Shown here one piece after another: positions 9,601 to 11,148 of a stretch of DNA of 33,304 nucleotides. Under the pieces are notes generated by a model. The model ran no database searches and was not told the DNA's origin. It saw nothing but the letters and a program-made list of their open reading frames with translations. The stretch lies in the NCBI RefSeq assembly GCF_006345805.1, contig NW_021832092.1, forward strand, positions 1 through 33,304, given 5' to 3'. This DNA comes from Octopus sinensis (Eukaryota). The position numbers and the translations under genes are program-made. Numbering within the stretch: position 1 is the stretch's first letter; every line of letters starts with the position of its first letter.

Positions 9601-9943
9601 TAATATATATATATATATATATATATATATATATATATATATATTATCTATCTATCTATCTATCTATCTATCTATCTATCTATCTATCTATCTATCTATC
9701 TATCTATCTATCTCTCTATCTATCTATCTATCTATCTATCTATCTATCTATCTATCTATCTATCTATCTATCTATCATCTATCTATCTTCTATCTATCTA
9801 TCTACTATCTATCTATTCTATCTATCTATCTCTCTATCTATCTATCTATCTATCTATCTATCTATCTATCTTCTATCTATCTATCTATCTATCTATCTAT
9901 CTATCTATCTATCTATCTATCTATCTATCTATCTATCTATCTA
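9601..9943. repeat. (TA)n followed by a long (TATC)n array
   Basis: Visible tandem runs; forms the left flank of the hammerhead repeat. Confidence 0.95.
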
Positions 9944-10535
9944 CAATAAAAATGGTAAATAATTTTCCTGTGGTTTTTCATGTAACCAACAATAATTTAC
10001 CGGTAAATTTCGGTATGTAAATACGACAAAATAATTGTCAAGACCTTTGTAAGGTTCAGTATATAGTAAAGAGAAATAAGTTGGCTAGCAGCAAGCTGTT
10101 TCGCCTCATACCGAAGGAATTAGAAATGGCAGTCAAAGACCGTTTTTTCCATTTCTATAAGTGGAGATTCCAAAAACGAAGGCCCTTGCGTGTCACATAC
10201 ACAAAACCGGAGTGGCAAATACACGAATTCAGTCACTTACCGTTAATAGCGAACACGGTGTTTCTGGATCACAAACAGGGGAGTTTGAATTCCGTCATCA
10301 GCGCTATATTCGTTAGCTTTATCAAATGCCACCAGCCCTCACTTCTGACCCAGCGACATCAGATAGTGGGGGGAAGTGCGCAGATGTTAAAACCAAGTAA
10401 CGACTGGGAACGTAAATTTTCCCTCCAAAATTCTGCCATGCGCGCCTTCTGGGTAATCGTAATGGAATGAGGAATCCACATGGTAATACAATAAAAATGG
10501 TAAATAATTTTCCTGTGGTTTTTCATGTAATCAAC
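9942..10535 (-). mobile_element. Hammerhead-bearing 545-bp repeat unit, left arm (about 1.09 units)
   Basis: tacaataaaaatggtaaataattttcctgtgg occurs at 9942 and again at 10487 (period 545). One hammerhead lies on the minus strand. Confidence 0.9.
10246..10307 (-). ncRNA. Type I hammerhead ribozyme, intact core
   Basis: Minus strand reads ATAGCG-CTGATGA-C-GGAATTCAAAC-TCCCCT-GTTTGTGATCC-A-GAAAC-ACCGT-GTT-CGCTAT. It has a 6-bp stem I, CUGAUGA and GAAAC cores, and a GUU triplet. Confidence 0.85.
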
Positions 10536-11148
10536 ATTTCTAATTCCTTCGGTATGAGGCGAAACAGCTTGCTGCTAGCCAACTTATTTCTCTTTACTAT
10601 ATACTGAACCTTACAAAGGTCTTGACAATTATTTTGTCGTATTTACATACCGAAATTTACCGGTAAATAATTGTTGGTTACATGAAAAACCACAGGAAAA
10701 TTATTTACCATTTTTATTGTATTACCATGTGGATTCCTCATTCCATTACGATTACCCAGAAGGCGCGCATGGCAGAATTTTGGAGGGAAAATTTACGTTC
10801 CCAGTCGTTACTTGGTTTTAACATCTGCGCACTTCCCCCCACTATCTGATGTCGCTGGGTCAGAAGTGAGGGCTGGTGGAATTTGATAAAGCTAACGAAT
10901 ATAGCGCTGATGACGGAATTCAAACTCCCCTGTTTGTGATCCAGAAACACCGTGTTCGCTATTAACGGTAAGTGACTGAATTCGTGTATTTGCCACTCCG
11001 GTTTTGTGTATGTGAGCCGCAAGGGCCTTCGTTTTTGGAATCTCCACTTATAGAAATGGAAAAAACGGTCTTTGACTGCCATTTCTAATTCCTTCGGTAT
11101 GAGGCGAAGCAGCTTGCTGCTAGCCAACTTATTTCTCTTTACTATATA
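10535..11148 (+). mobile_element. Hammerhead-bearing 545-bp repeat unit, right arm (inverted, circularly permuted, about 1.13 units)
   Basis: catttctaattccttcggtatgaggcgaa occurs at 10535 and 11080 (period 545). The arm is the reverse complement of the left arm in a different register. Confidence 0.9.
10901..10962 (+). ncRNA. Type I hammerhead ribozyme, intact core (predicted cleavage 10956/10957)
   Basis: atagcg ctgatga c ggaattcaaac tcccct gtttgtgatcc a gaaac accgt gtt cgctat, identical to the minus-strand copy at 10246-10307. Confidence 0.85.

Follow-up and report, generated by a model that had tools for sequence, protein, structure and literature searches.

A probable retrozyme-like element inserted as an inverted pair in the genome of Octopus sinensis

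The window analysed here is a stretch of 33,304 nt from Octopus sinensis (RefSeq assembly GCF_006345805.1, contig NW_021832092.1, positions 1 to 33,304), and its subject is a non-coding 545-bp unit, present at positions 9942-11148 as two inverted, back-to-back arms that each carry a type I hammerhead-like motif. We hold with moderate confidence that this locus is the dead-end insertion of a retrozyme-like, non-autonomous element, mobilised by the machinery of a Penelope-like element (PLE) in one retrotransposition event. The element probably belongs to a known kind, of which it would be a new example from cephalopods, and does not represent a new kind; it is not a proven retrozyme family. The observations behind this reading are the geometry of the arms, the target-site duplication (TSD) around the pair, the microhomologies at its junctions, the non-random occurrence of the motif, the lack of a coding signal and an excess of RNA structure on the hammerhead strand.

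Geometry of the two arms

Every base of the pair was mapped to the 545-bp unit, whose position 1 was set at position 10535 (Table 1). The repeat search returned two pairs of direct repeats with a spacing of 545, i.e. 9942-9991/10487-10536 (50 nt, one mismatch) and 10535-10603/11080-11148 (69 nt, one mismatch), and two pairs of inverted repeats, i.e. 10060-10539/10669-11148 (480 nt, 99%) and 9942-10128/10535-10721 (187 nt, 99%). The arms abut 5'-to-5' at 10535/10536, and no target DNA is found between them, the 2-nt microhomology at the inversion centre being all that lies at their junction. Their registers are not mirror-symmetric about this centre, as unit 138 stands opposite unit 1 (an offset of 137 nt), and the cDNA starts, which correspond to the RNA's 3' end, lie at unit 187 in the left and at unit 69 in the right arm, 118 nt apart. 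Non-mirror-symmetric arms fit two independent cDNAs. Among the copies six unit positions are variable (30, 135, 143, 346, 482 and 483), none of them within the hammerhead, and blastn found no further copy of the unit in the window besides the two arms. A preliminary description of the locus had already recognised an inverted pair of arms slightly longer than one unit, in different registers and with 5-6 mismatches between them, all of which repeat search and mapping confirm with exactly six variable positions; the length of 594 nt given for the left arm has to be corrected to 595 nt, with the CA at 10535-10536 common to the right arm.

Table 1. Coordinates of the inverted pair, its motifs and insertion site, and of the Penelope-like elements in the window.
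Feature	Position	Strand	Description	Basis
Left arm	9942-10536	-	595 nt; unit 138..545 then 1..187; 1.09 units	blastn and position map, repeat search
Right arm	10535-11148	+	614 nt; unit 1..545 then 1..69; 1.13 units	blastn and position map, repeat search
Terminal redundancy, left arm	9942-9991	-	second copy of unit 138-187; partner 10487-10536, 1 mismatch at 10531	
Terminal redundancy, right arm	11080-11148	+	second copy of unit 1-69; 1 mismatch at 11109	
Inversion centre	10535-10536	.	CA dinucleotide common to both arms; 2-nt microhomology	boundary inspection
Type I hammerhead-like motif, right arm	10901-10962	+	predicted cleavage point at unit 422/423	
Hammerhead-like motif, left arm	10246-10307	-	unit 367-428; predicted cleavage between 10252 and 10251	
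(TATC)n microsatellite, 85.5 copies	9606-9943	.	left half of the insertion target	Tandem Repeats Finder
Left TSD copy, TATCTACA, 8 bp	9938-9945	.	last 4 nt (TACA) also match the unit	
Right TSD copy, TATCTACA, 8 bp	11147-11154	.	first 2 nt (TA) also match the unit; followed by (TA)n, (CA)n	
PLE 1, Penelope-like element broken by stops and frameshifts	~6850-8328	+	reverse transcriptase motif C RYVDDTF from 7403; GIY-YIG-like GYSIPCSCGRSYKGET...EEH in frame 7753-8241	
Second PLE endonuclease remnant, GIY-YIG	29905-30159	+	Pfam PF01541, E = 1.3e-5, above curated cut-off	

Because both arms wrap around the same 545-nt period, the template must, judging from the sequence, have been multimeric or circular and not a fragment of a 3-5-kb element, so that the multimeric or circular template proposed in the preliminary description is upheld. 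Neither arm is interrupted at site 422/423, the predicted cleavage point, in keeping with a covalently continuous template, and the arms show a template without a fixed 3' end. A different source of the period would be an internal tandem repeat in the untranslated region or pseudo-long terminal repeat (pLTR) of an autonomous PLE, the locus then representing two heavily 5'-truncated PLE copies. Hammerheads are normally found in pLTRs, those of PLEs occur in genomes for the most part as solo motifs derived from truncated elements (PMC4209133) and some PLE families have internal tandem repeats (PMC8557442). Nevertheless, both arms wrap the 545-nt period and neither contains sequence derived from an open reading frame (ORF), the longest frame has no homologue in very large protein collections and no Pfam match (see below), and the unit is unlike all PLE copies sampled, so that we give two truncated PLE copies a small chance.

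The registers also bear on an origin at the level of DNA, i.e. a 545-bp satellite array rearranged by inversion and deletion, or two insertions that came to lie back to back. Inversions are frequent in satellites, and nested hits are possible, as PLE ribonucleoproteins can home to their own sequences (PMC11167929). Yet if a contiguous array had simply been inverted in place, unit 496, and not unit 138, would lie at the centre; such an inversion is ruled out, as is a fold-back duplication, which predicts a mirror symmetry that is absent here with unit 138 facing unit 1. As a matching 8-bp TSD surrounds the whole pair, no target DNA separates the arms and the arms are equally young, an origin by DNA rearrangement or by two insertions has a slim chance. 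An assembly artefact in the form of a chimeric palindromic long read has to be considered too, since inverted duplications are a known class of artefacts and PLE structures trouble assemblies (PMC8557442). Artefactual palindromes are mirror-symmetric, however, whereas here the two registers are offset by 137 nt, six positions distinguish the arms, a separate terminal redundancy is found in each of them and the pair has a TSD; we regard an artefact as extremely unlikely. A DNA transposon with terminal inverted repeats, or of the foldback type, was rejected as well, the arms being permuted partial tandems and not terminal inverted repeats.

Read-through RNA of 9942-11148 could form a hairpin with a 480-bp stem, 99% paired, and such a transcript could be a potential substrate for small-RNA or ADAR pathways. 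A sub-threshold match to the Rfam family MIR2606 at 10482-10726 is nothing but the hairpin that unit 138-187 forms with its second copy on the other side of the inversion centre.

Insertion site and age

The word TATCTACA is the longest one common to both boundary zones and brackets the whole pair; among the other 23-nt zones of the window 1.4% share a word of at least 7 nt with the left boundary zone (P ~0.014). A TSD of 8 bp argues for one event. The overlaps of its two copies with the unit, TACA on the left and TA on the right, represent microhomology between target and template, and the empty site would have read (TATC)n-TATCTACA-(TA)n. The outer ends lie in microsatellites, just as first described: (TATC)85.5 borders the left arm, and beyond the right arm come a short (TA)n and then (CA)n. 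Long arrays of (TATC)n/(GATA)n are found repeatedly in the window (300-580, 9606-9943, 14430-14700 and 32500-33100), next to many (CA)n, (TA)n and trinucleotide arrays, and the (TATC)n beside the element is taken as a common feature of the genome and not as a tail that was carried in by the element.

The copies differ by six substitutions (five events if 482-483 are counted as one) in about 1,207 nt, i.e. by 0.4-0.5%. Based on these differences and on a calibration for Octopus in which a Jukes-Cantor distance of 0.09 equals 25 million years (My) (PMC13282606), the age of the insertion would be about 1.1-1.4 My, a value to be read as an upper bound if errors of the reverse transcriptase are among the differences and as a lower bound if gene conversion takes place between the arms.

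The hammerhead-like motif

In the right arm, stem I consists of AUAGCG (10901-10906) paired with CGCUAU (10957-10962; 6 bp), the CUGAUGA box is located at 10907-10913 and the GAAA box at 10944-10947. Helix II (10914-10943, 30 nt) is composed of a C.A at its base, GGA/UCC, an internal loop, CAAAC/GUUUG and the loop UCCCCU, whereas helix III (10947-10955) reads ACA/CCG/UGU; cleavage is predicted after GUU (GUU/C), between 10956 and 10957. The motif of the left arm, on the - strand, is identical over a stretch of 91 nt. The core of the motif had been called intact, and the boxes, the GUU, the 6-bp stem I and the identity of both arms agree with this, but the term overstates the base of helix II, which is non-canonical and reads CUGAUGA-C-GGA...UCC-A-GAAA, i.e. 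contains either a C.A mismatch at 10.1/11.1 or a bulged C together with an extra A between C11.1 and G12. For a mismatch in this place we found a single precedent, HHR_Amex2 from axolotl, which has a U.U and shows 22% cleavage in 1 h (PMC7229834).

Helix III is near-palindromic (ACACCGUGU, 8/9 positions), and its calculated energy is 0.0 kcal/mol as a hairpin and -10.6 kcal/mol as a duplex of two copies. Helix III would thus need a dimer for its stability, like that of other animal hammerheads, a design known as the "dimeric ribozyme".

Motifs of the same or laxer stringency occurred by chance in none of 3,000 simulated 33-kb windows (first-order Markov, composition-matched, about 100 Mb, both strands, with a descriptor no stricter than the candidate), corresponding to a chance rate below about 3 per 100 Mb or about 2e-5 per 545-bp unit, and with a still more relaxed descriptor of the minimal hammerhead ribozyme (min-HHR) the real window yields these two motifs only. 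This rate bears on the view that the motif is a decayed or fortuitous look-alike without any ribozyme role and the element a simple non-autonomous retroposon. Such a view would be in line with the non-canonical base of helix II, the lack of an Rfam match, a hammerhead fold (-10.7 kcal/mol) that is not the local minimum free energy (MFE) structure (-14.4 kcal/mol), and the failure of 8/9 tested Xenopus retrozyme dimers to cleave in vitro. Apart from the low chance rate, however, the motif has traits beyond those required by the search descriptor, i.e. the near-palindromic helix III, the bulged nucleotide after A9 and a stem I that is retained in the MFE structure of the whole unit, and Rfam fails on a canonical PLE min-HHR as well; we consider a mere look-alike very improbable.

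The canonical PLE min-HHR in question was observed in O. vulgaris, in locus L001 (OX597819.1, about 11860-11930, - strand). It reads GACAC/CUGAUGA/A-GGCUGG..CAGCC/GAAA/CG/U-U/GUGUU and has no match in Rfam 15 even at E<=10. Since Rfam 15 misses it, Rfam-based counts of hammerheads in cephalopod genomes miss motifs of the PLE type. For the giant squid, 235 Rfam hammerhead_1 loci are reported, as a count only (PMC6962438).

Coding potential and RNA structure of the unit

The unit has a GC content of 40.9%. Its longest stop-free frame comprises 149 codons (447/545 nt) on the strand opposite to the hammerhead, located at 10021-10467 (+) and at the mirror position in the right arm. This frame matches no Pfam family, and neither 5.8 billion protein clusters nor 1.84 billion representatives (full HMMER, exhaustive) contain a relative. 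In simulation a frame of this length has P = 0.019, yet 21% of the real 545-nt chunks of this microsatellite-rich window match or exceed it, and for this reason the frame is treated as a product of chance, which it probably is. The unit was described as non-coding from the outset, and the lack of a Pfam match, the lack of a protein homologue and the unexceptional length of the frame uphold this. Two further identities were rejected. An autonomous PLE is at odds with the lack of a coding signal for reverse transcriptase (RT) or GIY-YIG in the unit, PLE 1 being 1.6 kb away and unrelated, and a tRNA-derived short interspersed nuclear element (SINE) with a hammerhead, as in Sm-alpha of Schistosoma, was dismissed as ARAGORN found no tRNA-like sequence in 8000-12500.

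As a circle, the hammerhead strand folds with -150.4 kcal/mol, compared to -125.0 +/- 6.2 kcal/mol for dinucleotide shuffles (z = -4.1; 61% paired), while the opposite strand has z = -2.4. In the MFE structure of the whole unit stem I is retained, and a long imperfect rod (unit ~195-513) has the motif at its tip. Unit positions 69 and 187, the two cDNA starts, fall in the two large unpaired A/U-rich stretches of this fold.

Model of the insertion event

Based on our findings we suggest that the template was a non-coding RNA with a 545-nt periodicity and a type I hammerhead, either the transcript of a tandem array or a circle. A staggered cut at TATCTACA, at the junction of the (TATC)n and (TA)n microsatellites, would have allowed reverse transcription from both 3'-OH ends, with priming in the two unpaired A/U-rich stretches of the RNA, at unit 187 by a 4-nt and at unit 69 by a 2-nt microhomology. 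The two cDNAs, each slightly longer than one turn of the period (595 and 614 nt), would have grown towards each other until their ends were joined at the 2-nt microhomology, resulting in a 5'-to-5' inverted pair inside the 8-bp TSD. The machinery was most likely the RT/GIY-YIG enzyme of a PLE, acting in trans, and in multimeric transcripts of the source array the hammerhead, as a dimer, would cut out monomers. At the locus itself there is one ribozyme per strand and no head-to-tail pair of the same orientation. It is a dead-end copy, and the caveat of the preliminary description that it cannot excise a monomer on its own was correct.

The model is in keeping with what is known of PLEs. Their insertion signature comprises a partial tandem, an adjoining inverted and 5'-truncated copy, a bias towards microsatellites and TSDs that are hard to see (Craig et al. 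2021, PMC8557442), and the 5'-to-5' inversion of the arms matches this published architecture. Purified PLE protein from anole cleaves and extends both target strands in vitro, unlike R2 and L1, and prefers AT-rich DNA (Frangieh et al. 2024, PMC11167929); it also starts reverse transcription internally on unprocessed multicopy RNA (PMC11167929). In truncated PLEs, pairs of hammerheads on opposite strands are found 100-700 bp apart (Cervera & de la Pena 2014, PMC4209133). PLE remnants are present in the window itself (Table 1), and for O. vulgaris 31 recently active PLE families with 336 insertions are reported (PMC13282606), which makes a mobilising enzyme plausible.

Twin priming by LINE-1, a long interspersed nuclear element (LINE), yields 5'-to-5' inverted insertions with a TSD. 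The same periodic hammerhead RNA might therefore have been moved by a LINE (RTE, CR1, Dong-R4 or L1-Tx1 type): twin-primed LINE-1 insertions share with the octopus locus the origin of a 5'-to-5' inverted pair in one event, the microhomology at the internal junction and the TSD. LINE-like ORF pieces are present in the window at about 20.2-21.4 kb (by eye only), no sequence link connects the unit to the sampled PLEs, and many LINE families have recently been active in O. vulgaris (PMC13282606). The octopus arms differ from twin-primed LINE-1 copies, however, in that they contain neither poly(A) nor LINE sequence and are both longer than one period of the template, and neither cDNA start shows a poly(A) or a common 3' tail. 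Moreover, partial tandems, an inverted partner, a microsatellite target and a hammerhead are jointly the signature of a PLE, and extension of both strands has been demonstrated for a PLE enzyme but is stated not to be known for R2 or L1 (PMC11167929). A LINE as the mobilising element is, in our view, distinctly unlikely.

Several observations weigh against a PLE-mobilised, retrozyme-like element. The cDNA start sites are 118 nt apart, compared with a PLE 'tail' of 30-40 nt, and in vitro PLE insertion proceeds without any need for hammerhead cleavage (PMC11167929). The unit has no similarity to PLE 1 of the window or to the PLE copies in loci L001, L002 and L004, a comparison that covers one octopus PLE family as opposed to the 31 recently active families reported (PMC13282606). 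The base of helix II is non-canonical in that no G10.1-C11.1 pair is directly flanked by A9 and G12, and because this pair, next to G12, is highly conserved in PLE hammerheads (PMC4209133), cleavage may be weak or lost. The Rfam hammerhead models gave no match at the gathering score or at E<=10 on the 33 kb, on 1.3 kb or on 101 nt; in a control Rfam also missed the canonical PLE min-HHR of O. vulgaris L001, so that this null carries no weight. Finally, no second copy of the unit was detected in any of the DNA or protein sets searched, so that neither the 'family' nor the 'active' of the preliminary description is shown: exact or gapped patterns of the unit had no match in IMG/VR, JGI metagenomes and GTDB genomes, which are nearly devoid of cephalopod DNA, and blastn and nhmmer found none in four cephalopod loci (62 kb) fetched via their PLE proteins. 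As the collections searched hold almost no cephalopod DNA, this absence says little.

A bolder version of the proposal has the unit as a member of an undescribed family of cephalopod retrozymes, still active, whose 545-nt circular RNAs contain a variant of the hammerhead with the C.A (or the extra A before G12), and the locus as the footprint of concerted reverse transcription on both strands by a dimeric PLE enzyme, with about 600 nt per cDNA on one circular template. We consider this combination rather unlikely.

Comparison with known elements

Retrozymes are reported to be derivatives of PLE pLTRs with consensus lengths of 51-972 bp, which in ray-finned fishes average 650 bp (Li, Clavereau & Pollet 2026 preprint, 10.64898/2026.07.22.740005). 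The statement in the preliminary description that known monomers are mostly shorter is outdated in the light of this range, which includes 545 bp. With metazoan non-LTR retrozymes (Cervera & de la Pena 2020, PMC7229834; 10.64898/2026.07.22.740005) the octopus unit shares, besides a length within these limits, the character of a non-coding repeat of low GC content with a type I hammerhead in one polarity, a short helix III that needs a dimer, co-occurrence with PLEs, a probable multimeric or circular template, a structured RNA from the hammerhead strand and a TSD longer than the 4 bp of plant retrozymes. It differs from them in that the locus consists of two inverted 1.1-mers and not of a tandem array with at least two ribozymes of the same orientation, in that it is known from sequence alone, and in its helix II, whose base has the C.A or the extra A before G12. 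The literature searched contains no description of a retrozyme from a cephalopod.

Animal and PLE hammerheads are characterised by type I topology, by a nucleotide that separates A9 from the G-C pair, by the length of helix II and by a helix III that is short and palindromic, at 15.2-16.2 and in loop 3 in the minimal form (PMC4209133). The unit has in common with the PLE pLTR hammerheads the nucleotide between A9 and helix II, the long helix II and an opposite-strand pair a few hundred bp apart, and with PLE insertions the pLTR-like terminal redundancy, the abutting inverted and 5'-truncated copy, the microsatellite or AT-rich target and the internal start of reverse transcription. Set against the minimal PLE hammerhead (PMC4209133), it has the bulged C after A9, the G-C, the long helix II and the near-palindromic helix III, but an extra A between C11.1 and G12, and its helix III has a 3-nt loop as opposed to the minimal ACGU in the min-HHR of L001. 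Unlike PLEs it contains no RT/GIY-YIG ORF, and its period is 545 nt, compared to 3-5 kb.

MRC1 of Chlamydomonas (PMC8557442) is likewise a short non-coding derivative of a PLE, with pLTRs, head-to-tail multicopy insertions and a PLE enzyme that acts in trans. Elements of the MRC1 type match a known autonomous family at their 3' ends and lack canonical hammerheads, whereas the octopus unit has a hammerhead-like motif and no autonomous partner among the PLEs sampled.

The locus is unusually clean, being about 1 My old, with a TSD that is exact, a microhomology at each of the three junctions and two cDNAs that differ in register, and it may serve as a useful in vivo counterpart to the cleavage and extension of both strands and the internal start of reverse transcription by a PLE enzyme reported in vitro in 2024 (PMC11167929). 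Should genome-wide data confirm the element, hammerhead retrozymes would be extended to cephalopods, and if the motif cleaves, the known variation of hammerheads would grow slightly by its non-canonical helix II base. The current picture of retrozymes as PLE-dependent elements is unchanged.

Other features of the window

PLE 1 ends 1.6 kb from the unit. Copies of it in O. sinensis CM016859.1 and O. vulgaris OX597819.1 show a DNA identity of 85-89%, and as all alignments with them stop at 8328, the unit is not attached to PLE 1. For the C-terminal piece of PLE 1 187 homologues were found, among them O. vulgaris (79%) and O. sinensis (69%) proteins. The inversion of the unit had been said to mirror PLE 1, a parallel for which the sequence offers no support: PLE 1 has no inverted partner within 4000-9000 and no sequence in common with the unit.

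Open frames at 20243-21369 (+) resemble, by eye only, the C-terminal part of LINE ORF2 (e.g. DIERLYIKRIEGGRGL) and have no Pfam match. A repeat at 26186-26543 is 89% identical to L002 5558-5916, and a dispersed SINE-like repeat of 170-230 bp occurs in both orientations at 11902-12088, 18213-18711, 19180-19366 and 28122-28472, with 80-90% identity to loci of O. vulgaris and O. sinensis.

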